A stretch of DNA of 64,000 bases from Bispira polyomma. Its lineage: Eukaryota. Each line of letters opens with the position of its first letter. Position 1 is the stretch's first letter. The DNA lies in NCBI GenBank assembly GCA_965649765.1, contig OZ287757.1, positions 29,016,001 to 29,080,000 of the forward strand, read 5' to 3'. Shown here one piece after another: positions 12,501-55,267 of the stretch. The notes under the pieces were generated by a model. It was not told the DNA's origin. It made no database searches and saw nothing but the letters and a program-made list of their open reading frames with translations. A program made the position numbers and the translations under genes.

Positions 12501-12996
12501 AAATTTTGCCCTTAATCAATAGTTTTCTTTTTAAAAAGTTTGAAAACATCAATACAAACTCTACAAAAAATGGCCAAGAAAGAGACACAATTATTACCTG
12601 GATGCATTTTATGACGACCAGTACATCCCAAGATTTTGGGAATACAGTTCAAACTGCCATATATTTGGCATGAAGATTGTTTCTTTGATTAAATTACTAC
12701 TTAATAGTTGTAATACCAGTCTGGGTGAGGTTTTACAGTGGCAATTTATGATAAACTCAGAAGCATCAATTTCGCCCATTTAGATGTGGTGCCTATCGAT
12801 CCAATTTTTAAAAACTCAAATACTGGGATATTTGTTATGTAGTTTTTTTTTTCCTTTGCTACCAATCATCAAAGTGAAAGAATTTTTCAAAATCATAAAC
12901 TACAAAACTACGGTTATCAACAAAAGTAGAAAGGGTACATACCCGTATCAATGCTGATCCACATGGCAATAAAATGTGGGATTCTGCCGGTTTCCC
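9524..12996 (+). repeat. Local tandem duplication: ~1.5-kb unit (9524-11030, 11395-12903) plus partial units starting ~11031 and ~12904
   Basis: aaaactacggtt.tcaa.aaaagtagaaagggtacataccc recurs at ~9525, 11031, 11395, 12904; long near-identical blocks including a (TG)n tract; homologous fragments at 40.8-45.3 kb. Confidence 0.85.
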
Positions 12997-15575
12997 CGTA
13001 TGATTTTTTACAACTATCTGCAGGGTACAGGATTTTGGCAGAGGTAACTTTTCACACAAAAAAGGTTTACAAGTGTATAAATCTTCCACCAAAACCCAGT
13101 CTCACATGTGAATTAAAAAAATTTGATTTACATGATCAACTGTAATTAATGTACATGCGTAAATGTGACTGTGGCATACACCTGAAGAGGCATACCCCTG
13201 ACTGCCTTAATAGGAAAACAGACATTATGTTAAAAAACATGTGACTGTACACATGTACATTGTACAATGTGACTGTGTTGTTACTTCAGAGACTATCTTG
13301 CATACTATCTGAGCCAGTAACTCTACCGAGACAGACCTCACAATCTTACCGGATTGCAGGCAGAGTACCCATGTGGGAGTCAACACTTCACCTGTGATCT
13401 GGAGGCATAAATCGACCCAGATGAGCCCTACCAAGTTTAGCTCCACAGCCACCTCACCATATTTGAGTATGATGGATAAATTACCCACTTATGATCTTGA
13501 TTCCACTACTTGTTCCCCACCAGCTACACCTGGAAAGGAGTTGCCTTGCTATTATACAGCTGACTACTATCGGGAACAGGATAAACTGGACTACCTCTAC
13601 CCAAATCTGTCATGTTCCGGGACATCACCAACCTGGAGGACCCTCTACCTTCAGATCTACAGGATTTTACTCAGTGGGGCAACTTGCCCATTGACTCTAG
13701 TATCAAACAGTTTGACTTATTTGAGTGTTTGGAAAACATATGCACTGACTTATAAAAGGATATCTACCATCATAGGTATTATTTTTATCATTAGGTAGAT
13801 TACTATCAAATAATCTACTTTACTATAAGTTTTATTCATTATTTTTAAAAATATAGTATTATTAATCCTAGCATGGAAAAAAATTACTAAGTTAATATCT
13901 ATTTACTTTTTAATTTTATTCTAGTATATTTCCAGGAATTTTGTGTATTAAATACACCATCCATTGATGTTATTATAAGGTTTATACTTCATAAGTATTA
14001 AACATTTATGTACATTAAATACTGTTATTATCCATTTCCTCCTGTGTTATCCTATCTATAGGTCAGGAGTTTTATTACTCATGTAGTAAACTACCTAAAG
14101 CTATAAATGCCGCCCTCTTCCTATTATACTGATCGTTACTAATTAAGTTAACTGTGTTTCACAACACACTATTGGTGTATACAGCTGCCTATTAGTAAGA
14201 ATCACTAGAGCCACCCCAACTTGTCCAGGCTCACCTACTGGTCAATCCACAGATTACCCCAGTTACCAACGGTTTGAATTTAGTAACACCAGACACTACT
14301 GGTGGGCAACTACCTATTCAAGTGTAATTACCACTGGAGCCATCTCATCCTGAGGAGGCTCACCACTGGTCAACCCACTGGTAATCATGGCAAGTAATTT
14401 ATCACTTTGGTCAATCACATCTATTGTTACCTTTGTGCACCCCACCATATAGACAAATATCGCCAACCAGATATTAACCATTCACCTTCAAATAATGAAT
14501 TAGTGAATTCATATTCGTACACTACTAACCATATTTGAAGACTACCGTCAAGGTGTAAATACAGAATGTGTATAAACGCACTCACACACACTCACATTGT
14601 TTTAATTTGTGTATTACATGTCTATTCATCGTATAATTTAATAGGATTTGATGCCAGATTTATTGTCAACTACCTATATATTGAACTTAATTAAAACACA
14701 TATTAATGGGTTATCATTTATTCAGATTTATTCATTTATTTTTCCTTACAGGAGAATAAATGTTAAAAATTATATATACATAATATGTTTTTATTAATCA
14801 TTTATAAGTTTACTTCTTGCCTATTAATCCTATAATCAAAAAGGATTTGATACCAGATTCATTGTCAACTACCAATATATTGAACTCAATTAAAACACAT
14901 AATAATGGGCTCATCATTTATTCAGATTCATGCATTTATTTTTTCTCACAGGTGAATAAATATTAAAAATTATGTATACATAATATATAATATTTTATTA
15001 TGAATCACTCAAAAGTTGGCTCTTGGTATAGTACTCACCTGAGACCTATCCTGACCACCTAATTCAGTTTTAACATGATTTAGTGTCTCTACGATAAGTA
15101 TCTTTGAGTCAGAGCCCATTTAGAACTCTGCTCCACCCAGCTGCTCTGCCTGATCCGGCGGGGTCAGGCGGATTCTATTTTTCACCTTAAGAAAAAAAAG
15201 GTGAATTTTTTTACAGCCTCTGTTGAGAACACCCACTGGAGTTCGAAATATATTTTCGACCAATAATATATAAGGCAGTCAGTTTACTCCTGTCACCTAC
15301 ACCAAGTTCAAATAAACTCTTATAATATTCTATTGATATGTCAGTTGCCCATAAACAAGCTTCTGAAACTGTTGTTATGATGGATCTTACAGATGACTAT
15401 CATATTCTGTTTACAGTTAACGTCACTCTAACCTGAGGTATGGAGACCACCAGATTTGAGCTTAAGTTTGACTTGTGCTTGAGAATTATGAAGAATATAT
15501 TTTTACAATACTTGGAATTATCGAGATATGTACTGTTTAGCACTGAATAAACTCGTTCTTAACCCAGTTTATATA

Positions 15576-18500
15576 CTATATAACACCACAAAAAGGTTTC
15601 TCTTCAACACCACTATGTATTACCACTGGTCCGGCTGTCTTCTGAAGGACTTTCTTTCTTGAGAGAGGTATCACTAACAAGGACATCAGCCCACCAAAGA
15701 TGCCCAGGCCTCCAGTTACAAAGTAGGGTAGAGTATAGCTACCACTTACACGGTAGAGATACCCTATAAACAACAACATATACAAATGAGATACAAATGA
15801 GATGTATTCCTTATACTTCTCATTTATACAAATCACTGTGTCATCCGTGACGAATAGTCACCCTTTATGACCTTAAATATACATTCGTTTCATGTTAATG
15901 ATGTCTCTGTGACGTATTATTGTAAGAACATAACACAAAAGTTCTTCCAAAAATGTTTTAAACTGTTCAAAAATAGCGTGTATAAATTTGGATTAGTGAG
16001 AAGTGTGGATTCATTACATGTCACTGGCAGATTAGTGACCATAAGTGTACATTTGTTCCATGTCTGTAACATATTGGTGTCAAAAGGTAACACAAATGTG
16101 ATTTGAAAAGTTTGATATCAATATGTGACGTCAGAGAAAATCTACAGACAAATAGACTGGCCACTTTTGTTCAACTCAACGTAGGCTACATGTAAGATAT
16201 GAGACCAGGCCATTTGTAAGGTAACAGACTAGAAAACTGTGGTGAGGGCTGTGTGGGAGTATAAAAGGTCTCCTCTTTCTAAATTCTCCCTCCATTTGTG
16301 TTTACAGAAGAACAAGTATCAGAAATGATACGCAGCATTACTGAGATTTACAATTTTAGTTCTTATTATTATACTATCTCTAGTCATGCCGATTGTGAAA
16401 TTGATATATTGTAGCAAATTTCTACAAACACATGAAAGGCCTACGAGCAGAAATTGTTCTGTTGTACTGGGAAAGCCAACGGCGACCCGAGTGATAGTAA
16501 CCTGCTTGATTCTACTCTGTATCAAATAGTATATCTGTAAACTCTAGCAACGGCCCTAAGGGTAATACTGAGAGTAGCATTGTCCAAAACATAGATTTTC
16601 TTCAGCAAAATGTTGAAGTTCAGACCCAGGTTGAGCAAAGGCTCAAGTAGTCAAAGAAAATCAATGAGAACCCCTCGCAAGGTAGGGTTAAATCCTAATG
16701 CGGGGGAGGTAAGGAAGTTCTATTAAAAAAAGGCGATAGACTGAAATGTCAAGAATTGAATATTTTTGAAGTACACATGGTACTGCAGGCTGATGGACGT
16801 TACAATTATTCTGGCTTACAAATACCAGTTCAATTACAATTGCATGAAAAAAGTTTAAGAAAATTACTTATTGGGACTGGCAGCTATCACTCCTAATCAA
16901 GTACAGATTTCCTCCGGATTTTATCCGCAGTAACAGCATAGAATCACACGGTGACAACCATAAATGAGCCAATGAATGGCCAATGAATGTAAATTTGGAG
17001 CCATGCTTGGGCCCTTTGAGAATCCACCAATCAAAAATTTGAATTTTTCTTCCCTTATGACTAGGGACAAATCAAGCTCAGTCAAGAGGAGAGTGATAGT
17101 CGACCTCAGCTGGCCTCAAGGCGCTTCCCTTAATGCAGGGGTTTTCCCAACTTTATATTTAGGAACTGAATTCATTTTATTGTATGCCTCCATTGATAGT
17201 TTAAAGTATTTTGGGCGCTGTCAGATTTATCGTAAGGTCAGAGGGCCACGTTATTTAAAATTACATCAACGATTTGTGTGTGTCTCATTACCTAAAAAAA
17301 TTCGTACGACAAATCAGAATAGTTACTTTCTGAGCTTGGCTTAACATTAAGCCAGAAACTAGTTTCCCCAGATACAGTAGTGTGTTTAGGAATAATAATA
17401 ATACTGTCGAATCTACCATGTCCATACCAGCTGAAATTAAAGTTCTGTATAAAAAATGGGAGACCAAAACCCATTGTACAAAACAAGAGTTGCAATTCTT
17501 GCCAGGACTACTTCTTTATGTCAGAAAATGTATCAAGTACGCCCGGGTTCTTCTTAACAGAATGCTCAAATTGCTAAGAAATAATCACAGCAAAATTCGT
17601 TTTAAGGTAACCCCTGAATTTAAATGTGATTTGAACTGGTTTCAAACATTCATAGATCAGTTCAATGGGGGTCTTGTTTTTTTATCACAAGCCTGCTAAA
17701 AACAATATCATACTTTACAGGTATGGGAGGCATCCAGGCCAACCAAGTTTACCAAATTTAAATATCAACTCACATGCAAAATGACAACATTGCATACCTT
17801 GAGATGTTAAACATTGTTGTAGCAATGAAATTATAGCTGTGTTTTTAGTGGAAAAACCAGGGATTCAGTGCTGGCGACGTACACAAGAAAAATATATATG
17901 TTGGCCAGTCAGTCCGATATCAAGTTAAACGTGGTGCATATTCTTGGCAAAAAGAATCAAACTGCAGATCTGCTCTCCAGATGGACCGAGAACATAAATA
18001 ACCATTAACTCTTATTCTAGTTAGCATGACCAGTGCAATGGCTGGCCACACATGAGAGTATGTTGAAAGTAAACCATAACATTTAGTTATCCATATATTG
18101 TATTGTAATTGTAGATGCTAATGCCTTGGACACACTACTGACCAAGCGGGATCTTGAGAGACTGATAACAGCATTTGCACCTTCATCAGTCAAGGCTTAT
18201 CAACGAATGCACAAATCATTCTTAACCTATGGTGATTTCATGTCATTGCCTGCGTCTAAGGTGAATGTATTCCAATTGTTTTCCTATCTAGAATTTCTAG
18301 TGTTTTATGCTATCTCAGTCTCCCAAATTGCAAATAATCCGTCTGTCATCAGCCTTTGCTGATCCAGAGATCAGTTATACAGCTTTTCTAATCAATAGAC
18401 TTCTTCAGGCCAGTTGAAATGTTTATTTGATATTCCTCTTCTTAAAGCCTTGGCACAAAAGTGTGATTTAACTTACATGGGACAAGTGTATAAGGCAGTA

Positions 18501-21500
18501 TACCTAACCATTGTTTTTCAGTTTCTTGAGAATGTCTAACTTGTGCCTTCACTCAGAAAATGCTCTTTCACCACAAAAAAGTTGGATAGGGCAGATGTCA
18601 TGTTTAAACCTGGTCATGCAATGATCATGGTCATGTGGTCAAAACACTGCCATCAAATTGGTAACTTTGCCTGCCATGCTAGATTCGGTGCTTTGCCCAG
18701 TCAAAGCTTTAAAAAATGTGCTCAGTATTACACCGGCAAGCAAGAATCTGCCTTTATTCCAATACAAGATGGTCCAAAATTGGGTCTCATTCAAGGACAC
18801 ACTAGTTCACAAGCATCTGAAAAACATATTGCAAATGCTGGGTGTAACCCAGCCTGGACTGACTTTCTACGCTTTCCGATGTTCAGGTGCCACATTTGCC
18901 TTTAATAAAGTCCAATTACAAGACATCCAAAGAAATGGCACTTGAACATCAGACTGTGTCTAGCGATATATCACCGACTCTGCACACACTGTGGCCCAGG
19001 TGGCTGACTGTTTTAAACAGGTTCTACTTACTACCTAATCTCTGGTATTTGGTGGACTGACAAACCAGATTTGCCAGTGAAGTAAAGAACTTCAATATAC
19101 AATAATTTAAAATAATACTAGCTTTTGGGCATAAGTTTACCCGTAGTATTTAATACATTGCACTAATACTTTACGAGGGACCTCAAACTCTTCAAATCTA
19201 AATATTTCAAATTCAATTTAAGGTCACCTTATTATAAAAAAATATCTATCTTAAACTCAAGATATGGTAACCTCAAACTCAGCTCACGGTAACCTCACAC
19301 CTTTAGCTAAGGTGACCTTATGCCCATCCATAAATTATCAAAACTGTATATACTTCAACAGTAGATTTAATATAGAACTACCACATTTTAGCCGCACTTC
19401 TTTATTTCTCTATGGTAACTCATTAAGTAAATAACCTGAACCTGAACCCCGAGGCACTGAAAGCTAGAAAACCTCAAACTAAAAACTTGCAGTAAATGTC
19501 AGTGGAGGTGACTTACCGGCTAGTGGAGTCCCTATAAACTGACCAAGCCCTGAGAAGACCATCAACAGTCCCAGACCTCTGGCTAGTTTCTCTATACCAA
19601 CCAGGTCAACCAAAGCAGGCTGCTGTATTGTGGTAAAACTAACTGTAAATGACAAACATGAGTTGTCAGGCGCACAGTGTGAAATACACAAACGTTGCTA
19701 TGGTCACTATTTACTCGGGCCCAATTGGCAACCCTACAAATATTTATCTGACACCCCTCAGTTTGGACGGGTTGATTACTTTTAACCAATCCATGAATGC
19801 CTCAAATATTATTTCTACGATAGCACGTTATGGCAGTGTACATCCATGGCTGTACTCTCCAGAAAACTGAAGCTCAACCAAGTTAAAATCTGGGTCTCCA
19901 TATCTCTTGCTATAGTGAACTAAACTAAAGTCTACATTTTACAGATTAGAATTCAGTATCGAAAGACTCTAACTATAGTTACAACTTTCTGCAAATTGGA
20001 TATATTTGTATGTAAATTCTTGTACAGACGACAATGGAAGTCATTTTCAATAACCTTTTTATTTTGTTCTGAACAATAGTTACATAGTATTACAGTCTTG
20101 GGCAGTTAGTTAAGTCTTGATAAGAAAAATATTTCCAAATATTTATAATACGGAACAACTCAGACTTGTTGGGAATTTAAATATCACTTTTCATAACTCT
20201 TTAAAATCCACCATTTCTTAAGACCATTTTTTGAGTCTTATCTACATTTACTTTCATGTTCGATAAAGTATTATTCAAGAATATTTATCTGGTGTTGTAA
20301 CCTCCATACTAGGTCAGATAGTTGGCCTATATCATCTGCGTCTGATAACATAAACAACTTTGTACAATATTCATCTAGGTGTACTCCTTTACAATTTCCT
20401 TCAATACTCATTTCTATATAAGTATTTAAATACATTATAAACAATGATGGGGCTAAGCTTACATCCTTGTCTGGTGCCTATAAAACATTTAAAGAACTTG
20501 ATTAGTCCCTCGCGGGTATTGTTACATGCTGATAACTTTTAGTACATAGACTTAATCGATTAAACAAGAGAAAATGAAAAACCCTGTCAAATGCCTGAGA
20601 AATCAACAAATAAGCAATTAAAAACGGCCTCTTTTTTACAAAGATATTTACTAATTATTTCTTGAAGTACAAACATATAATTAATTCCCATTCAAATTAC
20701 TTGCGGTTCGACCGTTTACTATATGAATTCCTAATGTCGGACACATCCACAGCAACTCACATCCAAAGTTATTGCATTTGTCATTGGGATCAAAAGAGTT
20801 TCTGGAGTATAAAATGGCGATCCCTTTGGAGGAATGTAACAGCAGATCAAAACTGGAATTTGGATGTACACTGCTAACTTACTACTGATATTTTGTCTTT
20901 TAGTAACTTTAAATATATTAGTTTTTATATACCTCCATTCCAATGTCCAGTAACACCACAATGATATCCACTTAACTAATGATAACAATAGCCATCAAAC
21001 AGATCAGAAAATTGGTTGTCGAGAAATGTACATGTTTCAATAAAGCCTATAATATTCTATGTGTACATATATTCCTTGAACAAAAGGCCATGTTTCATGT
21101 ATTTTAGCCCTTGAACATTATAACTAATTAGTTTCAGTTCTTCTGCCTGTGTTTACCGAAATAGCCCTGGCCGAGGTGCTGTTTGGTGGTAAAAATGCTT
21201 ATTTAACAGCACTGCAATGATTTTTGGGGCAGGAAACAGTTAAATAAGTGTTACTGACAATGTGCTTTGGATAATAACTAAAAGCACCATAACGGTTATC
21301 TACCCACTACAAATTCTGACTTCACCGACTGAGCTATTAAGCTCTCACATGTTACTGATATGACTATATCTTACCTACTGAGAGAGATAGGAATCCTACA
21401 ATCACCATTATAGTTTCTAGTGTCCTTGCTGCACCAATGACTATCAAGAAGAGGCCCAGTCCTGTGGCAGTCAGACTGTGGAGGATAAGCTTGTTCCGTC

Positions 21501-23433
21501 TGAGAGCTGGTGTGGATGCCAGCACACCAAACAATGGTCCTAGCACAGCATTAGTCAGGCCGCCCACTGACGGTACAAAGGCTGCTTTATACTTGTCTAT
21601 GCCCTCACTTAGACACTTGTTGACAATGTGAAAGTTGTACACCGAGAAGTTCATGTTGACCGTAAAGGATGTGAAAGAAAAGAGCAAGTAAGACGGTTTC
21701 TTGATGAGATCTATAGGAACCAGCTGTCTCAGGTATATCCAGCATTTACTGGAGCAAGTAAAAGAGCAGTTTTTGTCGTCTGGCAAATGCAAAGGTTTCA
21801 GGAATGGTCGATATAGAGCACATAGCCAGACATTCTGCATAAATATGGTCGAGTAGAGTACCAAGGTGCCTCGCCAGCCCAAGTGGTCGACTGCATATCT
21901 AGTGCATGGAGGGAACACAAAGGTACTGATACTGAAACCAGCGACAGTAATACCGCTCACTAGGGTGCGTTTTTTGGTAAAATACTGCTGGACAACTGGC
22001 GACACAGACACATACATCACACCAAAGCCAGCACCTGTAGGCAGATTGTGATATTTATAGGACACCTACATTATCTGCAAGGTAAAGATAAATTAAAATA
22101 AAGTAAAGATTTTCTTTGACTCAGGACTCAACATACAAAGGTGAGAGGTGAAAGAATGTGATCTATACACCGGGACTCCTCTCAATGATCCTCACTATTT
22201 ATGTGACTGTTACTGGGTCGCCTCTAGATGGGATAAAACCCATTTCCGTTTGTTCCGAATTAGCCAATTGAGTGCTCTGTCCACTAAATTACAGTGACTT
22301 TAAATAAATAGTGGAACAGAAGGTAAATATTTTCTTGATTGCAAACAGCCAACTAGCATCATTCGCTTTCTTGAATATAGAGATTTGTACTTGTTGATGA
22401 CCATTTATCAACATCTCGAAAGGTATAGAACCCTGGTCTTCTGTGTTGCTAAGCAAGTGGAACACCATTTCCAGTGGTCAATCAAGCCACTATATATCTA
22501 GCTGGGATCGAAATCTAAGTGCCTGAATGTGTCCACTCACATGATCGCAGTGACTTACCAGAGAGAGTATAGCCCACAGTAAGCATGGTGATGTTGGTGC
22601 TGAAGGAAGCCAGAAAACAGGAGATCGATGCTACAAGTGCTCCACACATGGCTACCACACGCATATCTTTACGATGTAATAGGCTGCTACTCAGAAAACC
22701 TGTCAGACAACAGCCTTTAAAGTTACATATAGTTTGTTTAAATCCTACAGCATGCCATTTCTTGTTAGTCCTCTATGGAATCTTAGCAGTAAAACTAAAG
22801 ATCTGCTTAGTTACCCCAGTATATTGTACAGAACCTCCGGATAATGAACACCTCTATATAATGAATGCTTTTTCCCAGTTAGTGTTCTCTCTGTAGAATT
22901 TGAATCTAATTTCTTCTCTAGTCACTTTTAACAGCTTTCATATCGGAAAAACTAGATTTAATAGAGGAAGAAACCATTGCTGAAGCACTGTACCTGTATA
23001 AAGTACCTGGCAAATGTCTTCTCTCTTTAAAATTAGACTATAGTGAATTATCGAGTAGCTGTACTCTATCTTCCAAAAGAGATCAATAACGAGTAAAATA
23101 TCCTACCTAAATAAAATCCAACAGTTATACCAATATATGTCAATATTTTTTTATAATAGAAAACTATTTCTAGGTTTAATTCATCTGTATATGCAGGTTT
23201 TTACTACATTTACCTGCTATGTGTAAAGCAATGGAGTGATAGGCAGCTGCAGTGCCCACTAGAACCACATCAGCATCAAATTCATCCATATATTCCTTGT
23301 ACAGTACTGAGAAGGATGTGGAGAGGATGAGATCTGAGACGTAGTTAAAGAAACAGACAGCCACCACCACCCAACCATAGCCGCTGTCTGGTGGAGTGAT
23401 GGTTGGAAGGGACGCTTCCACTTCTACTGTCAT
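15576..23433 (-). CDS. SLC16/monocarboxylate transporter-like gene B; exons 23214-23433, 22559-22699, 21375-22034, 19517-19642, 15576-15763 (~444 aa)
   Basis: PDSGYGW and YFTKKRTLVSG motifs; GT-AG phase-1 introns; close paralog of gene A; open frame to TAG at 15576-15578. Confidence 0.9.
16100..19450 (+). mobile_element. Decayed Ngaro-like YR retrotransposon E3 in intron 4 of gene B (antisense to the host gene)
   Basis: gag remnant (VEQRLK..NENPSQGRVKS), RT (GAMLGPF..KRRVIVDLSWPQG), RNase H (LEMLNI..ADLLSRW), YR (FYAFRCSGATFAFN); many stops; boundaries approximate. Confidence 0.85.
19990..21130 (-). mobile_element. Decayed LINE RT/endonuclease fragment in intron 3 of gene B, interrupting the MITE paralogous to 803-1036
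   Basis: Minus strand encodes GTRQGCKLSPSLFIMYLN (RT motif) near 20430-20478; MITE left end at ~19848 and right end (aaatagccc) at ~21160 flank it. Confidence 0.7.
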
Positions 23434-23741
23434 CTGGATCAGTCTGAATGGATTTGAGGAGGTGGAAAGCTGTCGATATAGATAGTAAAGGTGTAAACAA
23501 TTATTGAATAAAGCATTGGAGATGCTGAATCTTCAGAGCCTTTGATTGAATTCTGTTAATGATGTTTCACACGTACACACCATGAGGGATATCTGTACAG
23601 GATAAGCGATATCTCACAGTTTCTGAGAACTTGGCAGGACCAGTCCTGACAGGTGCTATCCACTCAGATATCTCAACCTTCCATCCAGACAAGCTGCGTG
23701 AAAACAGTACTCAATAGGATGCTGGGTACAAATGGAAAATA

Positions 23742-23959
23742 CACCTCTGGGCGGTGTGAGTTTGAATCCCGTCGATGCCTATGTGGGAAAGGTGGTAGTT
23801 CCTTACTGTGGGCCGCTGGTTTCAGTGCAGAACCTTGATCAACTGTATGCAGTGTTTCCTCCAGCGTTTCCAACTACCCGTCCCAATATAACCTAAACAG
23901 GTGCTAGAGTGGACGTTAAATATCCAAATTTAAAAAAACAAAACAAAAAAAAACAACAA
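23742..23959 (+). mobile_element. 5'-truncated tRNA-derived SINE (same family as 60442 and 61133)
   Basis: Near-identical to the 3' part of the 60442-60704 copy; A-rich tail; flanking acaaatggaaaata/acaaatgaaata resembles a TSD. Confidence 0.85.
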
Positions 23960-24566: not shown

Positions 24567-24764
24567 TGGAAGGTAGCCCTCTCGTTGTCCTACATTCTCA
24601 ATAAGATAAACACTCTTGTTCCACTGACCTGGGTTCTGATTCGTTGGTGGGTGGTCCACTTTACTAATTAATTAATTATGTCCCGCCAAAAGTGTGGAAT
24701 ATCCCACTTTTAATTTATAGGTCAGAAGGGCAAGACGCCATTTTATGTTAGACAATTTCAAATT
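24567..24764 (+). repeat. E1 split direct repeat A1 (partner A2 36721-36942)
   Basis: tggaaggtagcc...gacaatttcaaatt shared; A1 has a ~24-nt deletion near its start. Confidence 0.9.
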
Positions 24765-25392
24765 TTAAGGAACTTTTATTTTGTGTTTCCAAAGGATTTA
24801 CCTGGAGATTTTATGTGCTTTCTTGGAATAAATCACACGGAGATCCTGCTGTGGAGTTCCTGACATGTTATAAGCTGTTTATGCTTGGATTTATACGCAT
24901 ACTGCTCTACTTGTTGGGGCTATGAATGAGGGCTGTATACTGTGATTTATGTTATCTTAACTGCTAGATTTTAATATTTTAAAGCATTTTTACATTATTT
25001 ACAAACACACCCTCATTCCATGTATATGCAGAAATCTAAGCACATTGTGCTATATTTCTATTTTCAGTAAAACTAACTAGACTATATATATATATATATC
25101 AGTGCAATCCAGTGCACGATGGTGCAATAATTTACACAGAAACACTGAACTACACAGGTGTCTGTATTTAAATCGTGGTGCAGGAGAATCATGTACAATT
25201 GTTTGTGATTACATATAAAAACAGTTAACACACGGTGTACCATGAAACCACAAACATTCCCAATTGTGACAATCCACACCAAGGTGTGAAACAAAATCTA
25301 GGCTGAATACAGGGTATTCATTAAGTAGTGGAAAAGACATTCTTTAAATAAAACATTACCGTAAAGTGACTAATAGCTACTTAGAGTGCATT

Positions 25393-26394
25393 ATGGCTCC
25401 TAGGAAGACATATGATGATGAGGCCTGCGGGTCTAACCATCAGAAACCAATCAATGAAAGATGTAGTGGTGAAAAACATTGTACCGGATGTTTCGGATGA
25501 CGAACCGGACATGTCATCTGCCCAGGTTAATAAACTGATCCTGCAGCAGCTCACTGACTTAAGTAGTCGTATGACTAAGATGGAGAAGAGAGCAGACGGT
25601 GCAGATGGTAGTGGTGAAACCAGCAGTGGCCAGACGACATCGCAGCTTCCCGCAGAAGTTCCTATGGCTGCCAGCAGAGACCCATTGGCTGACTTATTGG
25701 TGCCTTCCATACAGACACTGAGGCAGTCAACACACATCAAGGAAGCTGTGGACATCCGACTACGAGAACTGACCCGCATAAACGAATCAGGTAACTTTCG
25801 TTCCCAAAGGGGCGGGGCTGAGACAGTGTGGGTTAAACGGCAAGTACCTTGGCCGCAAAACTTTATACTGGGGGGGCAGACAAAATCTAGACTAGCTTAT
25901 GACAATCTCTCTATGGCCCAATGGGTCTCAGGTTTCACCAACATAATCCAAGAAGAACAAAATAGTGTAACTAAGGATCTCATGCTCGAGTACCTTTCGG
26001 AATTAATGGAGGATTGAGCCATGATTTTTCTTGGAACACGGCTAAAGGCACTCATGCAGTCCTCCTCTGTAAAAAGGATGAGGGCAAAGTTTCTTGGGAG
26101 GACACCCATAAAATCGATATGATCCGTAGGGCTCATGCCCAGAGGGTTACCACATCACAAAATTTCTCTAGTTAGGGCTCGAGTAGTAGAAAAAACACCA
26201 GTGAAAAAGGCAAACCCTCCAGATTTTTCCAGAAAGGAACTTGTCCGCAAAAAACTGACCATGAGTCAGGTGGTCAATTATATACCCATATATGTGCTCA
26301 TTGCTTTGTCGGAGGTAAAATCTACAACCACCCATCCAAAGATTGTAGAAAGTTAAACTCTGGGGGAGAAAAAACAAATTCAAAAAACGAATAG
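25393..26394 (+). pseudogene. E1 gag (frameshifted)
   Basis: MAPRK..CGSNHQKPINERC N-terminal motif, SQRGG..WPQNFIL..QWVSGF core, C-terminal Cys/His cluster (C..H..HICAHC..H..C); frameshifts near 25.47 kb and ~26015. Confidence 0.8.
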
Positions 26395-27124
26395 GGCACT
26401 ACAAGTCTGCAGTGCCCATTTTTTACTCCAAGATAATAACCAATGGGGTGGTTGCAGCTGCAGCAAGTGACAACTGGAAGGCAGATTGGGCAAGAGTTAA
26501 TTGCAAAACACACGCTGATAATGTAAAAATTAATAAGGTCAGTCAAAAGCCTAATTCTAGTTGCCACTTGAACTGTAAAACTTTAAATAATGTATCTAAA
26601 AAAGTTAACACTGTATTGTACAATAATAATGTGAGCAAATGTCACCTGGTTGAAAGCCAGTTAACAAAAAATTGTGTACCTAATGTATGTCAAAATAATG
26701 TAAAAAGGCACCTATTGCAGAGCAGCCGCAACAAGCAATACGGTAAGACTGATAAACCCACTAAACCCTATGTAAACAGACCAAACATCAACAAGAGTTA
26801 TGCAACCAAAATAGGTCAGACAACAGAACAATGTCCGAGTTCCCACAATAGGTTTGCACCCTTGGTAGAACATAGAGGGGATGGGGTGAACACTGACCCA
26901 AATATGGGGAACACTGAAAAAATCACAAGTACTGATACCAGTACAAGGGGACACAGTATTTTAGAACAAAATACACTCACTAGTAGTGAAGACAAATATG
27001 ACTTGCAGTTACAAGTTAAAGTCTGACATAGGGATACAATTGCACAAGCTAGCAGTAACTCTATTAACAAGCTATGGAATAAGCAAACACACAGTAAGTT
27101 TGGTTTTATACCTCTTGGTGACTT

Positions 27125-27336
27125 TTGTAGTCATTCCTCGCAAAGCATGGCTAGTCAGTCGTGAAGTTGTAATACCTTACTGTATTATATACTGTTTACC
27201 CAGATACACCAATCCTAGACCAGAACCTCTCTTACTTCACTACCAATCAAATCCTCTAGCTTTAAGTCAATTTCCCGCCTTTTCTCACATTTGGTCATTA
27301 TTAAGTTGCAAGTTAATGTAGCAACACCTTGAAATT
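27125..27336 (+). repeat. E2 split direct repeat A1 (partner A2 32615-32826)
   Basis: ttgtagtcatt...caccttgaaatt repeated at 32615-32826. Confidence 0.93.
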
Positions 27337-27505
27337 ACATTGGAATCGGCAAATAGAGCCGCCATATTGGAAATAACTGTTTGCATGAAGAGAAACAAGC
27401 TTATTTTATATTTATTAAACATTATTTTACCTTTTCGTTTAGTGATTTTAGTGAGTTTTAACTTTTCTCATCTTATAGTGTGCCTTTTGTGTTGGATATC
27501 TTATT

Positions 27506-28867
27506 ATGGGCCGTGCGAAGAAGAAGTCTGTGGCTTTGTGTTCACGATGTAATTTTTCACATTCTCGACCAGTGGGTACTAGGTGTCGGCTGGCCATTCA
27601 AGACGCCACGTCGGTCGCAGAAGCCAGCACAGGTTTTTCTACTGAAGTCCATGGTGCAGACGTTGAAACCAGCACGCTCAACTCCGTTGCTGACTCGAGT
27701 CACACTTCTGAAGATCACGTGAGTTTTGGTCAGTTCTACAAAGACGTTTTCACAGAGCAGCAGTCTATGATGAAAACACTAGTGTCCACGGTAGCTAAGT
27801 TACAGGAAGACGTATCCGACTTAAAGACGTCTCGTTCATCTTCCCCCCAGGTCTCGTCAACACCTCACACGATTAGGCCTCAGAGGGCGGCTCCACCTAA
27901 GCTTCCAGCACCGTTTACACAAAACATGGGTTCTTCTTTACCATTTACTCAGACCTTCCCTCAGCTTCAGAACCCGCCAGTGAACTACACAGGAGTCAAC
28001 GATCTTCGTTCTCATGTTTCTCATGACACTTACCCGACACGTCACAACAATCACTTCCCAGACACACGACCAGTTCATTTGCCACCTCAACGGGAGGGCT
28101 ACACACAGGACCACGCTCAGAGGTCCTTACAGGATGCAATCCTGCCTACTCCAGATGTATTAAAGCAGTCCGCTATGATACAGAACGAGGTGTCACAACG
28201 ATTAGCCCGTTACGAGGCGTGGGCCGCTGACGAGTCGCTTCAAGGTAAGCTCACTACTAAACGCAAATCTGGTCGCTACAATGTATCTGAAGTGTGTGTC
28301 ACCGATCCAATGAAACGTTGGCCTAATGAAGCATGTTTTTCTGGTGTGAGTAAGAAACGAGTTTCTTATGATGAGCTTACTGTGTCACAATTTGCTGCAG
28401 GTCAGTTGCAGAACATCTTAGAAGTGAGAAACCCTACTATTTCTCGCGCCATGTTAGTCCAGTTAGCAGATACTTTAAAAGATGCCTCTAATATCTCCTG
28501 GCAGATAGCCAGAGGTTCGTATGCATGTAACATGCACAATGTGGAAGAGGGGCGCCTCAGCTGGGTAGACGAAACTAGGTGGACAATGAACCGACTGTCC
28601 TATTCCCAGGCTTTAATTTCGAACGGCGCATCTTCAAATTCAACTTCCTCGAATTCCTCCTCGGCCACCGGAAAGCATGAGATGCCATGCAGGCACTACC
28701 AGAAGAATATGTGTCAGCATCAGAAAGACCATGAGGGCAACAACGCCATTTTTAAACACATCTGTGCCAATTGTTTTCGTTTGCATAAGAAGCACAATGC
28801 ACATCCAGAATCCAAGTGTTTTAAACTTCACGGACGCCCCACAGTGCCCACAAGCGCACCCCAATAG
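27506..28867 (+). CDS. E2 Gag-like ORF1 (453 aa)
   Basis: Intact ORF; N-terminal CxxC..H..C motif, coiled-coil region, C-terminal CRHYQ..C..H..HICANC..H..C zinc cluster. Confidence 0.88.
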   Translation: MGRAKKKSVALCSRCNFSHSRPVGTRCRLAIQDATSVAEASTGFSTEVHGADVETSTLNSVADSSHTSEDHVSFGQFYKDVFTEQQSMMKTLVSTVAKLQEDVSDLKTSRSSSPQVSSTPHTIRPQRAAPPKLPAPFTQNMGSSLPFTQTFPQLQNPPVNYTGVNDLRSHVSHDTYPTRHNNHFPDTRPVHLPPQREGYTQDHAQRSLQDAILPTPDVLKQSAMIQNEVSQRLARYEAWAADESLQGKLTTKRKSGRYNVSEVCVTDPMKRWPNEACFSGVSKKRVSYDELTVSQFAAGQLQNILEVRNPTISRAMLVQLADTLKDASNISWQIARGSYACNMHNVEEGRLSWVDETRWTMNRLSYSQALISNGASSNSTSSNSSSATGKHEMPCRHYQKNMCQHQKDHEGNNAIFKHICANCFRLHKKHNAHPESKCFKLHGRPTVPTSAPQ

Positions 28868-31437
28868 GGGTGCGGACTGTCGACAGTCACCACAGCCAGT
28901 GGTTATATACAGTATGTTAAACCGGATGTCGAGACTGCAGAGCAGGAGCATTATGAGAGCATGAACTTAAGACATGAGTATAATAAGAAAAATTTTGAGT
29001 TACTTAATGAAAGGAACAATTTTGTGTACAGTATGAGCTTTAGGGATGGACAGTTCTTAAATGATTGTTCTCGTGATGTATTCACGACAGATGGACAAGA
29101 TAATGTCTCGTGTAGTAGCAACTCCGCCTTATGTTCTGTTGGTCACAAGTTATGTCCACCAAAAGTTCATGGCAGTAGTAATTTTATTGCAACCTCGTTT
29201 CTGGTTGATTTGTATAGTAGTCACACTTATGATGTTCTTAAAGGCCCAGTGTATTATATTGTTTGTAATGCTGACTCCAGTGTGTCCGGTGCATACACTT
29301 GGTTTTTCTTCCAAGGTCAATGGTTTCTTCAGAAACATGACCTCTCTCTACAAAACATGTGGCCCATCAGTTTGGTTTGCACAGGTTCTGTACCTGTTTT
29401 ACTCAGAAACACTGCTTCATATACCAAAGTTCGACCTTTACCAAGACATAAAAGGGTCACTCATACCCGTACAAACATCACTTCTTCTGATTATTATATT
29501 GCCATCATTGACAACATTTGTAGTCGAACCACTCAAACAACATACGACAAGCATATAAACACACGTGTGGATGACAAGTTTCTTTCACGGAACCATATAC
29601 TAACTGAGGACACACATATAGTAACCAACATTCCACAGGACGTTGTATTACAGAACAGTGACATACAGCACTCTCCCATAATGGGAGAAATTGTGAATGA
29701 GGACATTTTACTCACTGACCAAAGAACTTATGGTTTCATCCCTCACGGGAGAAACCAATTTAACTTCATAGGACCAGACAGACAACAGGTAGACTTGACT
29801 TCTTATGATAAGTTAATTGAAGTAGCTGATATCATAAAGAACACTAAGGTACCAAACTACAGACAAGCGCGTTTTCCCATCAAAAGTGATCTCAATGTTC
29901 TCAATTGGAAGAAATACCTACTCGATTATCCGCATCAAATCGTTTTACAGTATGTAGAATTCGGTTTTCCTATATCTCAGTATGAGAGGGACAGACTGAA
30001 GGTCATAAATGTCAAAAACCATTCTTCCGCTATGGCTTTTCCACAAGCCATTGACAAGTATTTCCTTACAGAAGTAGCTAAGGGCACCATAATCGGTCCT
30101 ATTTCAGGAAAACTTCACCCGGATATACATTGCTCACCTTTATTAACGGTACCTAAAGATATTGATCAGCGTCGTTTAGTTCTAAACCTTTCTTACCCCC
30201 TTGGACAATCTGTAAATGATTGTACAATTAAAAATAAATATGATAACGTCGCTTTTAACTTAAGGTTACCTACCATTGATCAAATCACTACCCGCATTGT
30301 TGAGTTAGGAACTAAGGCCACCTTAGCGAAAGTGGACATCGCTCACGCATTTAGAAATTTAAGAATTGATCCTTTGGATTGTTTAAAGTTAGGTTACCTT
30401 TGGAAAAATAATTACTTCATTGATCTTAGTCTAACTTTTGGACTCACTCATGGCACGGCGGCCTTTATGATTATTTCTGATTGTATTACTTACATTATGA
30501 GACAGAAAGGATATATAGTGTACAACTATATCGACGATTTTATACTTGTTGAGACTGAAGATAAGGCCACCTTAGCTTACACTACCTAGGTCTCCCTATT
30601 AACGTCAAGAAATTAGTTCCCCCCAGTAAGCGTGTAACTTGCATGGGCATCACTATTGATATAGACCTCCAAACACTCAGTATTGAACAAACTAAATTAA
30701 CCTCTATATTTGACACATGTTTGGAATTTAAATACTTGCATAAAGTACGTAAACAGAAGTACCAGTCACTACTGGGAAAGTTGTTGTACATACAGCGCTG
30801 TGTGAAGAATTCTCGGATATTCATGAACAGAATGTTAACGTTATTACGGCAGTCTACTAGTAGTAAAACAGTATTTTTGACAAGTGACTTTCATAAGGAT
30901 TTACAATGGTTTTTAACTTTCCTCAGACAATTCAATGGTACGACTAAGTATACATACCTGGATAGTTCACATGACGTGTCATTACAAGTCTACGCTTGTT
31001 TATCCGGAATCGGTGGCATATCGGGTTTAGAAGTGTTCAAAGCTCCTCTACCATGTTTTCTTAAACAAACACTTTCCATTGTCCATTTCGAAATGGTCAG
31101 TATTCTCATAGCTTTCAAATTATGGGGTCATAAATGGAGTAATAAAAAGATTAAGATACAATCGGATAACATGGCTGTGGTGTCTGTCGTACAGTCATCT
31201 AGAACCAGGGACGACTATTTGGGTTTGTGTTTAAGGAACATCTGGCAGATCTGTGCCTTAAGGAATATTGACTTGACTATAAGACATATACCTGGCAAAG
31301 ACAACATAATAGCAGACGCTCTATCTAGGTGGTTTGAATTAGACCATTTTGACAACACAATAAGACAGGAACTCTTACACAACTTCATCATGCATGACAT
31401 ACCCATTGAATTTTTTACCTTAGATACTTATGTGTAA
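28868..31437 (+). pseudogene. E2 pol (RT + RNase H), broken by one frameshifting deletion at ~30586
   Basis: ORFs 28961-30589 (RRLVLNLS, KVDIAHAFRNL, LTFG, NYIDDF) and 30643-31437 (HFEM, SDN, ADALSR); LGLPINVKK resumes in another frame at 30586; in frame with gag across a single TAG. Confidence 0.9.
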
Positions 31438-31443
31438 TTTCAG

Positions 31444-32423
31444 ATCCCTCTGACCCAGCCTCCTCACTGATCAAAGGAGCTTTGAGACGGCTGAGACAAA
31501 GTCACAGACCTAGGACACAAAGACAATATGACAGCCAGTTTAGACTTTTCTTGAGCTTCACAGTTTACTTTGATTTAAAGGAAACTTTCTGCTTTAACAG
31601 CGTTATAGCTTTTTTGGAATTTATGACACAAACAGGTGTCTCCTACAAAGTATTGAGTAATTACTTATCTTCCATTAGGCACAACACAAAGATTCTCAAC
31701 ATTCAGCAAACTGGTCTTTATGACCCTAGATTGCCATTATACTTGAGGTCATTACAACTCACTTCCAAATACACACCTCGGGTCAAAGGGGTTTTCGATT
31801 TGCACCAATTACAACAGATTTCACAAGCTTGTAACCAGTTTCAATTTCCTGATTTATTCAGAACAGCTTTTTTGTTTGCTTATTTTGGTTTTTTACGCAT
31901 TTCTAACCTAACCACCACATCAGGTCTCCCCTTTGATCCTACCAGACACCTGACAAGGGCTGATGTGTTGTTCGCCCCTCCAGGCATTCACCTCATATTA
32001 AAATGGAGTAAGACTAACCAAACCAGAAAAAACCCAGACATCATACAATTACCAGAACTTTCAAACCCATGGCTCTGTCCTGTAAAGGCAGCCACTTCGC
32101 TTTTTCATAAACACCCTCTCCCTCCTTCTTATCCATTACTGGCAAACCCACTAAATAAAGACCAGTGCCTCTCAGACTCTAGTTTAAGGCACACCCTTAG
32201 CTCTATCTTAACACAGTTAAAAATCCCCAAAGAGGGGCATTCCTTCCATTGCTTCAGGCGCTCAGGTGCCTCCTTGGCATTTAATGCTAATGTTAAACTT
32301 CAGCATATCCAAAAACATGGATGCTGGAAATCAGATGCTGTTTGGTCTTACCTTCAATCTACCCCTCACGCTTCCTCAATTATTCCAACAACGTTCGCAT
32401 CCCTCGTCTCTTCTACTTTCTAA
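31444..32423 (+). CDS. E2 tyrosine recombinase (intact, no ATG at the start; predicted second exon of a Gag-YR fusion)
   Basis: Catalytic R (GFLRISN), K (KWSKTNQ), HxxR (HCFRRSGA), W and Y (HGCWKSDAVWSY); tttcag acceptor at 31438-31443. Confidence 0.92.
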
Positions 32424-32431
32424 TTTGGCTT

Positions 32432-32614
32432 TGGCATTTTAAAATTATTTCATCAAAAATAATTTTTTGTACAGTTGTATATAGAGACGAGTAGTTAGAA
32501 TAAAAATTATCCCAAACAGCATCTGATTTCTCACTCTCAATAACTATGGCCTTTAAAGGTCACACTTACCCCAGGGCAACATTAGTTCAATGTCACTCAC
32601 AACTCAAACGACTG
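32432..32614 (+). repeat. E2 split direct repeat B1 (partner B2 33402-33584)
   Basis: tggcattttaaaatt...caaacgactg repeated at 33402-33584. Confidence 0.93.
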
Positions 32615-35257
32615 TTGTAGTCATTGCTCGCAAAGCATGGCTAGTCAGTTGTGAAGTTGTAATACCTTACTGTATTATATACTGTTTACCCAGATACACC
32701 AATCCTAGACCAGAACCTCTCTTACTTCACTACCAATCAAATCCCCTAGCTTTAAGTCAATTTCCCGCCTTTTCTCACATTTGGTCATTATTAAGTTGCA
32801 AGTTAATGTAGCAACACCTTGAAATTCCCACCCACCACTTTCCCTTTTACTGTCTAAAGTTAAAGTGAATTTTAAATTTTTTCGGACTTAGATGGAGCTC
32901 AATAACCGTGTGGAAAGTCCTATCTCTTACCCCTCCTCTGAGTTCACGTTTAGGGTTCCAGGGTTGAAGAAGAGCTCTGTGAGGTAGGACTTTCTGCAGG
33001 CGAATAGGTGCCCAGCGTTTCGAGCTCCCATTCATTTTTAAATTTAAAACAAAATTCCTTAGCCAGTAATCACTAACTTAATTTTACTCTTCGGGACTCT
33101 GATATTCCGAGTTAATTTGTCGCCTGAATGCGTGGTTGACTTTAGTATACTATGTATGTCGCCTTTATGTGGTTGACTATATCTATTATTATAGTACATT
33201 ATCTTATGTCATTTATCTTAGTATTATTGTTTATGTCCTACGTCTTATGTAGTTGACGATATATTTTATTTGTTGTAGTATTCAACTTTATGTCACCCAA
33301 TTATGTGGTTGGCTTTTATCTTAACACTTTACATACGTTAAGGGTTATTTTTCCCCTTTCGTATTTTAGCCAGTTCTTGGTTCTTGTTCATGTAGCCATA
33401 ATGGCATTTTAAAATTATTTCATCAAAAATAATTTTTTGTACAGTTGTATATAGAGACGAGTAGTTAGAATAAAAATTATCCCAAACAGCATCTGATTTG
33501 TCACTCTCAATTACTATGGCCTTTAAAGGTCACACTTACCCCAGGACAACATTAGTTCAATGTCACTCACAACTCAAACGACTGAACATTGCCTGCTTTC
33601 AACAAACAAAAATCCAGTAAGGATACACCACTCCAAATCCACCACACAGTGCGCAACAGTGGTAAGCCAAATTACATGGGTGAACAAATTCTCCTAAAAT
33701 TGGAATTAAATCCGGATGTCTGGCAACGTCAACTTAGTAACTACTGGGACACCCAGCTTATTTATTTTCTAAAGTATGGTTTCCCCTTAGACTTTGACCG
33801 ACAAAGGGAACTCAGCCATGTTGAAGAAAATCATAAGTCGGCTACAGAATTTCCCAATGATGTTCGAGCATATTTGGCTGAGGAAAAAGAACATGGGGCA
33901 AAAATGGGGCCATTTAGCACCCCTCCCATCTCCTCTTTACATATCTCACCATTCATGACTAGGGAGAAGCCTGGTGCAGCTCGTCGTCGGGTAATAATAG
34001 ATCTGAGTTTTCCAAAAGGTAAATCAGTCAATGCTGCAATTGAAAAGAGCAAATATCTAGGTACTGATTTCCTTCTAACTCTACCAACAGTCGATGACAT
34101 AACAAAGTAGCAAAACTCGGAAAAGGCACCCTCATATACAAGCTAGACATAAGTCGGGCATTCCGACATGTAAAGATTGATCCGGCAGACTATGACCTTC
34201 TCGGACTCAAAATGGACGACTACTATATAGATACGTGCCTGCCGTTTGGCTACAGGCACGGAAGCGCCATTTTTCAACACCTCAGTGATGCCGTGCGTTA
34301 CGTCATGCAAAGACGCGGCTATGACGTCATCAATAATATCGATGACGTCATTGGATACGGGCCCACAATTCATATGACAACCTGTACAAGCTCTTGCAAG
34401 AATTAGGTTTCGAAATCAGCAAGAAAAAGATAGTAACACCTACCACTAGGGTCAATTGCTTAGGCGTGCTAGTAGACACACAGAAATTTGCAATTGAGGT
34501 CCCTCCCCAGAAATTAGCTGACACTATTCAATTGTGTAAAACCTGGCTGAGTAAGACCAAATGCACAAAAAGAGAATTGCAATCACTCTTGGGTTCATTA
34601 CTGTATGTGGCTAAATGAGTCAGAGTAGCCAGGGCATTTTTAAACCGCATGCTTGACATATTACGCAATATAAGTGATGAACGTAATGTTAAACTAGATG
34701 TGCAATTCTTTCAGGACCTCATATGGTTTGACAAATTTCTCAGTAAATTTAATGAGGTTGCATTCTTTGACCATGCCCCAGTCACTGATCATATAGAGCT
34801 AGATGCATGCCTTACAGGCCTGGGCGGTAAATGTAACAGTTTAGTGTACACTAAGTCAGTCTCTCAGGGCTATCTAAATTTTACCATCGTCCACCTTGAG
34901 ATGTTAAACATCCTGGTGGCAGTCAGATTGTGGAAGCACCTCTGGGCAGGCAAAAAACTTATGGTCCACTGGGATAACCAAGCAGTGGTGTCCATCCTCA
35001 CCTCAGGCAGGACTAAAGATCTAACATTAGCAGCCTTTGCGCGCAACATCCTGATGGAAGTGGCGGGCGCCGATATAAATTTAAGAACAGTCCATATACT
35101 AGGGAAAAATAATCAAGCTGATCTGCTTATCTCTTATCAAGATGGCACATGACAGCTCATAACGAGTACAAATTAAGACAAATTATACCTCACCCTGAAT
35201 GGGTGAACGTTCCAGACCAATTACTGGACATTGACTGGAGTATATAATACATTTCAG

Positions 35258-36248
35258 GTCTCCCTTCCCTGGCAGCCCTCCTAGCAGCTCAGGCAGCCAA
35301 AAGAGTCCACCAGGCATTTAGGCCTACAACCCAACAAGCATATAAGGCAATGTTCAGGCTATTCTTGGCTTACTGCTGCTTTATTCAAATAAAAATTCAA
35401 GATACAACTCCTCTGCTGCTCTTGTCATTCCTGGAATTTTTGGCAGTGGGAAAAATGTCTCATTCCTCTATTGTTAATCACATGACAGCCATTAAAGCAA
35501 AATTTTCAATCTATGGGTTAGACACTACCCCTTTGAATGACCCACGTATTACATATTTCAGTAAAGCCCTCACATTACACAAACCATTCAAGGCAAAAAT
35601 CCACAAAATTATTAACATTGATCTCTTAACTCTCATTAGTAAGGTATGTGACTCAATGTATATGGGGCAAGTTTTCAAAGGATCTTATCTCCTGGCATTT
35701 TTGCCTTCCTTAGGATTTCTTATCTTGTACCTCACTCCTCCTCCTCTACTTACTCTCCCTTTCATCAGCTGGCCAGGGCGGATGTGCTTTTTGCTCCTCC
35801 TGGTCTCCACATTATCATCAAATGGACCAAAACACTTCAGGCCAAGAACACATTTAAGGTCCTTAAAGTTCCTGCCCTTCTTAACTCACCTATCTGTCCA
35901 GTGACAGCTATTAGAAACATCCTGGCCATCACCCCTGGCTCAAAAAATGATCCCTTATTTTAGTACAAGCAAAATGCCTCTTGGGGTCCCCTCACAGACT
36001 CAAGACTGCGTAGGAACCTCCATACAATACTCATCAGATTGGGTTTGAATGAATCCCCCATCACATTCCATGACTTTCGCCGCTCTGGCGCGACCATGGC
36101 TTTTAACAACAATGTCCCCTTGCAGCACATCCAGAGTCATGGAACCTGGACATCTGACTGCGTTTGGCGGTACGTGACCTCTGACCACAAGGCATCCGGT
36201 AAAGTGGCCCTCTCCTTTCAAACCCTTCTCACAACTCCTACTTCCTAA
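35258..36248 (+). pseudogene. E1 tyrosine recombinase (frameshifted)
   Basis: AFRPTTQQAY N-terminus, KWTKT, CPV, FHDFRRSGATMAFN..HGTWTSDCVWRY; frameshift at ~35710 and an internal stop. Confidence 0.88.
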
Positions 36249-36255
36249 TTGGGCT

Positions 36256-36720
36256 TTGGTGCTCTATTTTGTAATACCTAATTTATATGTAAATAGTCAT
36301 AATATAAACATTCTCATATTGTATTTAGTTTAAGGTCACCCTAAGCTCCTTAAATCACCTAACCTTAAACCCAAGGTTAAGGTGACCTCAACTCAAATTC
36401 CTCCCCTAACCTTAAACTCAGGTTAAGGCTACCTTAAACTGGTAATGCTAACATTAAACTCTACCTAGCCTTAAACTAGGTTAGGGCAACCTTACCTTTT
36501 CCCTGCCTTAAAGCCACAGTAAGGCTACCTTAAACTATGGCCCACTTAGGGCTTACTTAAACTTAACTAAGCTTGGCCTTAGGGTGGCCTTTAATTAAAC
36601 TTAGTAAATGCTTAACTCTAAAGTGTGTAAATAATTTAGTTGTTTAACATAGAAATAAAATTAATATTCCCACTCACCTCTTATCAATTCCAAGGTCACT
36701 TCACAGCAAGGGGGGCACTG
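36256..36720 (+). repeat. E1 split direct repeat B1 (partner B2 37414-37870)
   Basis: ttggtgctctattttg...cagcaagg(g/c)ggcactg repeated; ~460 bp. Confidence 0.92.
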
Positions 36721-55150: not shown

Positions 55151-55267
55151 CTTTGGCTATGAGCGGTAGGAGACACCTTTTACTAATTTGACCAGATCAT
55201 GTAATACAGGAATTAACCTAATCTAGTGTAGAACCAGTGATTTCAAACCTTGATTAAAGCATGACCA

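Follow-up and report, generated by a model that had tools for sequence, protein, structure and literature searches.

A conserved phase-1 splice predicted to join the N-terminal half of Gag to the tyrosine recombinase in Ngaro-type retrotransposons

We analyzed a 64,000-nt stretch of the Bispira polyomma genome (GCA_965649765.1, contig OZ287757.1, positions 29,016,001 to 29,080,000; hereafter the window) that carries five Ngaro-type fragments, E1 to E5. In E2, a phase-1 splice very likely joins the gag-like gene to the tyrosine recombinase (YR) gene, yielding a fusion of the N-terminal half of Gag with the recombinase. A host-spliced gag-YR mRNA would probably be the main way in which this YR, which lacks an ATG at its start, is expressed. 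In favor of the splice and its in-frame product are constraint on synonymous sites around the donor, a near-invariant acceptor phase despite a variable pol-to-YR frame, and a processed copy of a related family that has lost exactly such an intron.

Results

The window is AT-rich (about 32-43% GC), CpG-depleted, animal-like DNA without N, and E2 lies on its plus strand, as do the other features given here unless stated otherwise. The element is framed by split direct repeats: A1 (27120-27336) is 98% identical to A2 (32610-32826), and B1 (32432-32614) is 98% identical to B2 (33402-33584), which starts 575 nt past A2 and forms the 3' end. Between A1 and B1 lie three co-oriented genes. The first is a gag-like open reading frame (ORF), ORF1, of 453 amino acids (aa; 27506-28867), whose C-terminal half can be aligned to 12 other Ngaro-type gags with invariant Cys/His residues. 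It is followed by pol, whose 5' part (28868-30589) continues the gag frame after one TAG, encodes a long N-terminal extension and the reverse transcriptase (RT; RVT_1 match) and ends at a frameshift near 30589. The 3' part of pol (30565-31437) encodes the end of the RT and RNase H (RVT_3 match) and stops 40 aa past the D-x-LSR motif, with no methyltransferase. The third gene specifies a complete Cre-like YR of 325 aa (31444-32423), with the R-K-HxxR-W-Y residues, a Phage_integrase match and a Cre match over profile positions 18-161; its frame is intact over 31410-32423. At the gag/pol boundary (28865-28870), the lone TAG is followed by GGG, which may allow readthrough, and about 290 aa precede the RT.

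By structural definition, E2 and its relatives are Ngaro-type elements. They show the order gag-like ORF1, RT/RNase H ORF2 and YR ORF3, and the repeat pattern A1...B1 A2 B2, in which the internal pair follows YR (E2, E1, L038 and L049). Their pol stops 36-46 aa past D-x-LSR in all elements checked and has no Pfam methyltransferase match. B1 of E2 begins 8 nt after the YR stop, leaving no SGNH hydrolase ORF, which is optional in Ngaro (PMC7192593). A PAT-like identity was rejected for want of a methyltransferase domain in pol, and a DIRS1-like identity was rejected on the same ground and because the repeats are direct, not inverted. Every complete element seen has a unique spacer between A2 and B2, of 575 nt in E2 (32827-33401), 471 nt in E1 (36943-37413), 61 nt in L038 (11930-11990) and 78 nt in L049 (9352-9429). 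E2 is nested in the pol of E1 just past an FGFIP motif, with no clear target duplication. Its left junction and its B1/A2 junction share GACT-x-TTGTAGTC (27113-27125 and 32606-32620; compare 33578-33592), which is consistent with recombination at a short circle-junction motif.

The predicted 5' splice site of E2, AAG/GTAAGC (28242-28250), lies in phase 1 within a Gly codon of gag. The predicted 3' splice site, TAATTTCAG (31435-31443), is in phase 1 to the YR frame and ends with the first AG past the pol stop (TAA, 31435-31437). The intron between them (28245-31443, 3199 nt) would remove the C-terminal half of gag, comprising a helical domain and Cys/His fingers, together with all of pol. By arithmetic, the coding part of exon 1 (27506-28244) has 739 nt, that is, Gag residues 1-246 plus one base, and exon 2 (31444-32423) has 980 nt, that is, 2 nt plus 326 codons including the stop. 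Both exons fall within stop-free ORFs and together make 573 codons, or 572 aa and a stop. An earlier note on this DNA had proposed this junction along with related sites in the other four fragments. All nine quoted donors and acceptors were found in place, and its description of E2, namely a YR ORF without a starting ATG, an acceptor a few nucleotides past the pol stop and an in-frame product of about 572 aa, proved accurate.

YR-exon searches yielded hundreds of relatives, and 49 loci were fetched from metagenome assemblies with animal DNA. The E2 exons were searched separately, and the frame across the junction comes from arithmetic only. The YR-exon searches returned no fused protein among their top matches, which were mostly metagenome ORF calls that cannot splice. 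For Gag residues 1-250, homologues at E<=1e-3 were not found, and scans of viral contigs and genome contigs gave no match.

Donor sites were scored with a matrix built on general knowledge of metazoan 5' splice sites. The E2 donor is the top-scoring GT across the entire E2 gag, and the donors quoted in the earlier note rank first within ±600 nt in E2, E4, E5 and E1, in the last case 6 nt away from the aligned column. When 23 gag segments were aligned as protein only, 21 had Gly at the E2 donor column, and in 17 of the 23 this column has the best GT donor within ±600 nt. Codon usage was then examined in 20 non-redundant elements, with P values that treat elements as independent and ignore kinship. 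The donor Gly is encoded by GGT in 19/20, against a background of 30% (P about 2e-9), and in 14/15 when only loci outside the window are counted (P about 5e-7). Constraint extends to the neighboring codons: the preceding one ends in A in 16/19 cases (6.3 expected), across eight amino acids, the following one starts with A in 20/20, and the Lys after the Gly is AAG in 13/16 against 37%. The resulting consensus, RAG/GTAAG, is of the U1 type. In two loci kept out of sample, both splice sites occur as predicted (L049), or a phase-1 acceptor occurs at the homologous spot and a phase-1 donor a few codons downstream, at an SG motif (L046).

This SG motif stands 3-9 codons past the donor (window 16709; L046:2604; L033), and its Gly is often a second phase-1 donor-like site. 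It is the best donor in L046 and E3, strong and in phase 1, so that it may be an alternative donor and hence not a clean control.

On the acceptor side, AGs lying 8-35 codons ahead of the conserved RPxT motif of YR were ranked by an ad hoc and crude score in 23 loci from outside the window. The top-ranked AG is in phase 1 in 20/23 (P 1.6e-7 against 1/3; 1.7e-4 against the observed local mix of AG phases). Among the three exceptions, L006 and L046 carry a phase-1 YAG where the acceptor is normally located, and L019 is frameshifted downstream. Near-invariance of this phase is set against a pol-to-YR frame of 0, +1 or -1 in 7, 6 and 6 loci, respectively. The E2 acceptor lies 18.7 codons before RPxT, as in L001, L003, L032 and L037, and ties on the crude score with a phase-2 AG located 14 nt ahead of the pol stop. 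In the YR profile, the match to Cre begins at profile position 18 (Cre residue 32), so that the acceptor lies close to where a complete Cre-like recombinase starts. In the E2 YR ORF, 71 codons precede the first ATG, which falls within the region aligning to the Cre core-binding domain, and a start there would cut into that domain. An in-frame ATG upstream of the YR core is missing in 15 of the 23 loci. The N-terminal YR segments of elements with both sites are only 14-55% identical (median 26%). Chance, which the earlier note judged unlikely, indeed fits poorly with the donor codon and acceptor phase counts, and the conservation of donor and phase in other family members, named beforehand as a test, is present in most of the outside loci.

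A YR profile search (best 120 of 277 matches listed) was the only one in which a fused protein surfaced. P0304 is a natural database protein of 545 aa, the first 220 of which are gag-like and precede a full YR. Its locus, L038 (8851-12144; ENA ERZ25767047, ctg37778), is a complete Ngaro-type copy with A1, B1, A2 and B2, a single intact ORF and no pol, and its repeats are near-identical (154/154 and 121/122). The YR of L038 is 100% identical over 321 aa to P0326, which is found in seven full-length copies of the same assembly. Alignment with one unspliced copy, L039, gives 99.7% and 99.9% identity on either side of a single gap, and the genomic flanks differ. The gap measures 2844 nt, allows three equivalent placements and is the same in six unspliced parent copies. 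One placement removes GTAAGAA...GATTCAG in phase 1, ending 5 nt past the pol stop, and puts the L039-family donor in a Gly-Lys pair that falls in the same protein-alignment column as the E2 donor. We estimate roughly that a random in-frame deletion would land on both sites with a probability of about 7e-5. L038 is thus best read as a recent non-autonomous element made from spliced RNA, and the simplest reading is that this RNA was reverse-transcribed in trans and then integrated. Trans action has been described for the RT of DIRS-1 (PMC7192593). The matches listed included one processed copy, against a YR cluster of 65 members, which suggests that such retrocopying is rare. The intron over the gag C-half and all of pol, as the earlier note had drawn it, gains support from L038, in which exactly the homologous intron is lost.

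The part of Gag that the splice would remove is the most conserved, with the helical domain, Cys/His fingers and seven invariant Cys/His residues, and is presumably the assembly and RNA-binding part; it has no significant Pfam or PDB match, only a weak CCCH-finger hint (E 0.5). The retained half is variable and of low complexity. Its common features are a basic N-terminus and two helices, one coiled-coil-like and the other conserved and directly ahead of the donor, at Gag residues of about 216-240 in E2 (28151-28225). The predicted long helix or coiled coil of E2 (Gag 74-111; 27725-27838) relies on a low-confidence AlphaFold helix and a weak Pfam coiled-coil match; it has a counterpart in helix 78-108 of P0304. 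Both AlphaFold single-sequence models were of low confidence (pLDDT 38). The earlier note had the recombinase carry both a Gag zinc motif and a coiled coil. The coiled-coil-like helix is indeed shared, if not evident in L036. The putative N-terminal zinc motif, CxxC-x3-H-xxPxGxxC (27539-27586 in E2), is not universal, being present in six families (E2, L002 and L034-L037) and missing from others (L001, L039/L038 and E5). In P0304 (residues 20-30) and the L039 gag, an AT-hook-like KRRGRP stretch occupies the place where other families carry the zinc motif, hinting that gag N-termini may carry interchangeable DNA-binding modules. For the translation of pol, comparison of the families revealed neither a conserved acceptor or ATG nor a conserved frame relation; in particular, no second conserved acceptor serving pol was found, phases being mixed and the gag-pol frame variable.

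The other Ngaro-type fragments of the window agree with E2 to different extents. The host element E1 (24578-37871; A1 24578-24764, B1 36256-36721, A2 36756-36942, B2 37414-37871) has a phase-1 donor, CAG/GTAACT (25788-25796), and an acceptor in phase 1 to its YR frame (35249-35257). E3 has two phase-1 donors (16679-16714), at 16681/16682 and 16708/16709, the second being stronger and 27 nt downstream (intron start 16709), and a phase-1 acceptor (18106-18114) followed by a decayed YR to about 19035. E4 has a phase-1 donor, ATG/GTAAGA (57372-57380), and an acceptor-like site past the pol stop at the homologous spot (61090-61098); YR is undetectable downstream, so the phase is unreadable. E5, on the minus strand, is a gag fragment with the phase-1 donor AAG/GTAAGC (7829-7837) and no pol or YR in the window. 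The claim of a phase-1 donor at the homologous gag position in E1-E5 therefore stands, with the reservations that the best GT of E1 is 6 nt off the column and that E3 has a stronger second donor; that of phase-matched acceptors stands for E1 and E3 and extends to E4 in position only. A repeat of about 250 nt, present in opposite orientations (60439-60690 and 61133-61388), interrupts the E4 RNase H and truncates E4 about 20-35 nt past its acceptor, and a third copy lies upstream of E1 (23742-23947).

Outside the window, gag is found 0.7-2 kb downstream of YR on the same strand in L002, L004, L014, L020, L029 and L032, suggesting tandem or nested element arrays like E1/E2. L033:13369-17056 (minus strand), which was kept out of the statistics, is a further, oppositely oriented RT/RNase H element that has a long open frame with a weak YR-like match and is possibly DIRS-like. 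The N-terminal extension of P0308 (508 aa) is not gag-like in appearance. The window also contains three related MFS-transporter exons on the minus strand (1283-1996, a Pfam MFS_1 match, 21367-22065 and 47852-48562), the first two of which lie within a duplication spaced by roughly 20 kb (about 431-3667 versus 19500-23658). Two tandem arrays, 49695-50250 (51 nt x 10.9) and 55261-55517 (63 nt x 4.1), have units that are multiples of 3, the 51-nt array being open on both strands. Local duplications with units of about 1.9 kb and 2 kb (9523-13002 with 40757-45271; 50656-54219) have dispersed partial copies.

Discussion

Our analysis suggests an expression strategy in which unspliced E2 RNA would provide full-length Gag and RT/RNase H and also serve as the genome, while the host spliceosome would join the phase-1 donor in mid-gag to the phase-1 acceptor at the pol/YR boundary. 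The intron ends fit U2-type splicing, with GT...AG termini, the U1-type donor consensus and a pyrimidine-rich YAG acceptor, and the precise intron loss in the integrated copy L038 points indirectly to such splicing in the L039 family. Having dropped the gag C-half and the entire pol, the spliced mRNA would use the gag ATG to make a Gag-N/recombinase fusion that would act as the integrating enzyme. Its basic N-terminus and coiled coil may bring the recombinase into Gag/RNA/cDNA complexes or onto target DNA in the nucleus, with coiled-coil co-assembly with full-length Gag as the most likely means of recruitment. The splice would thus supply a start codon and a handle, for Gag co-assembly and/or nuclear targeting, to an enzyme barred from a Gag-Pol polyprotein, and splicing efficiency would set the Gag:YR ratio. 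The two purposes suggested in the earlier note, particle incorporation and stoichiometry control, are likewise conjectural. Since the spliced RNA would keep both terminal repeats, RT supplied in trans could occasionally copy it into pol-less Gag-YR elements such as L038.

Other routes to the recombinase have to be weighed against the Gag-YR splice. The YR might come from its own subgenomic transcript or from reinitiation at its own ATG, the acceptor then serving a non-coding leader or host exons and the Gag fusion being minor or absent. A conserved acceptor could indeed take other donors, and an in-frame ATG precedes the YR core in 8 of the 23 loci, including the L039 family. However, the remaining 15 lack one, the first ATG of E2 would sacrifice part of the core-binding domain, a non-coding leader would neither fix the acceptor at phase 1 nor match a phase-1 gag donor, and the processed copy joins gag, not a leader; we thus regard this explanation as improbable. 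It appears very improbable that ribosomes produce a Pol-YR polyprotein by frameshifting or by reading through the stop, with the splice-like sites being incidental. Such recoding is common in retroelements, and in most elements the pol stop coincides with or closely follows the opening of the YR frame. Yet the pol-to-YR frame is evenly spread over the three possibilities, the pol-YR gap ranges from a few to >60 nt, and a polyprotein leaves both the gag donor and the processed copy without an explanation.

The sites themselves might be deceptive, the donor being a look-alike produced by a conserved Gly-Lys pair and L038 a deletion at the DNA level, by RT template switching at a 2-nt AG microhomology, or by misassembly. 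Gly-Lys codons resemble G/GTAAG by construction, the nearby SG Gly is likewise rich in GGT, and the microhomology is real. Nevertheless, constraint reaches the synonymous positions of three consecutive codons, AG microhomology is expected from any AG/GT...AG/ intron, and the chance of meeting both predicted sites is about 1e-4. Against misassembly, the L038 contig has 43x coverage according to its name, versus 37-67x in sister contigs, and its flanks are unique. We consider this combination of coincidences extremely improbable.

Several observations nonetheless weigh against the Gag-YR splice. The processed copy is single, comes from one assembly and has the AG microhomology at its junction. 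It belongs to a distant family, L039 and E2 being 28% identical in YR and about 19% in the gag C-half, and E2's own family is without such a copy. The E2 splice therefore rests on sequence comparison and is extrapolated from the L039 family by homology of position, phase and consensus. The aligned column has no donor in L017 and GC in L032. GGT encodes the SG-motif Gly in 11/17 cases, and the donor differs from SG with only P=0.026; shared ancestry might account for some of the GGT signal, or SG might be a second donor, as in L046 and E3. The upstream ATGs of the eight loci count here as well, and some phase-1 excess also appears in two control windows inside YR. The role ascribed to the Gag half is tentative, and both structural models are of low confidence.

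A broader proposal, possible but on balance doubtful, combines two ideas. The Gag N-half would be a swappable recruitment and targeting module, whose coiled coil co-assembles Gag-YR with full-length Gag on RNA/cDNA and whose basic or zinc motif picks chromatin targets, and the splice would be ancestral to all Ngaro elements, perhaps also to PAT. If this holds, the accepted three-ORF map of the Ngaro superfamily is wrong, the dependence of site preference on ORF1 has an explanation, and Gag-YR copies without pol make up a non-autonomous class whose recombinase is intact.

The Ngaro/DIRS literature covered does not address how YR retrotransposons express their downstream YR or how the enzyme meets the cDNA without Gag-Pol or a protease. 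A conserved gag-YR splice would answer the former and offer a testable route for the latter. It would also give the probable true N-terminus of the enzyme, which is useful for reconstituting Ngaro integration or for tool use. The short ORF-finder annotations of Ngaro YR, which begin at an internal ATG, are probably truncated. The splice also predicts that pol-less copies form a class that can be recognized by one exact junction.

Access to a downstream ORF by removing an intron over upstream genes is familiar from the spliced env mRNA of retroviruses and gypsy and the spliced pol mRNA of foamy viruses, which retain little or no Gag and whose products are not Gag-recombinases. In long terminal repeat (LTR) elements, integrase is made within the Gag-Pol polyprotein and freed by a protease; we know of no protease in YR elements. 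A fungal DIRS element may have introns within its YR gene, but these would be another kind of feature. Spliced subgenomic retroelement RNAs are already known, and the part that would be new is the fusion of Gag to the integration enzyme.

The accounts of the Ngaro superfamily (order DIRS) covered here describe three distinct ORFs and are silent on splicing and introns, whereas here ORF3 acts as the second exon of a Gag-YR gene. No description of a gag-YR splice was found in the Ngaro/DIRS papers covered (PMC3783388, PMC3266345, PMC9210276, PMC4157794, PMC6681497, PMC7192593, PMC5633606, PMC8547959 and PMC13465315), a scope outside which lie the founding Ngaro papers and Repbase/Dfam; the chance that the splice was already noticed is about one in four. 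DIRS-1 of Dictyostelium is likewise a YR retrotransposon with a trans-acting RT and integration via a short circle-junction motif, but it has inverted repeats with an internal complementary region (ICR), a methyltransferase domain and overlapping pol/YR ORFs, and the parts of its accounts consulted describe no natural splice (PMC7192593, PMC5633606). In Cafeteria Ngaros, in which splicing was not examined, ORF1 has been linked to integration-site preference (PMC8547959), which a Gag-N/YR fusion could explain. A likeness in regulation is seen in the subgenomic GAG RNA of Ty1/Copia elements such as Arabidopsis EVD, in which a conserved splice of the genomic RNA also produces a subgenomic mRNA that sets protein ratios (PMC5580714). 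The Copia splice, coupled to premature termination, yields an excess of Gag alone (PMC5580714). In contrast, the Ngaro-type splice would skip pol and fuse half of Gag to the integration enzyme, on an RNA that keeps both ends and can retrotranspose.

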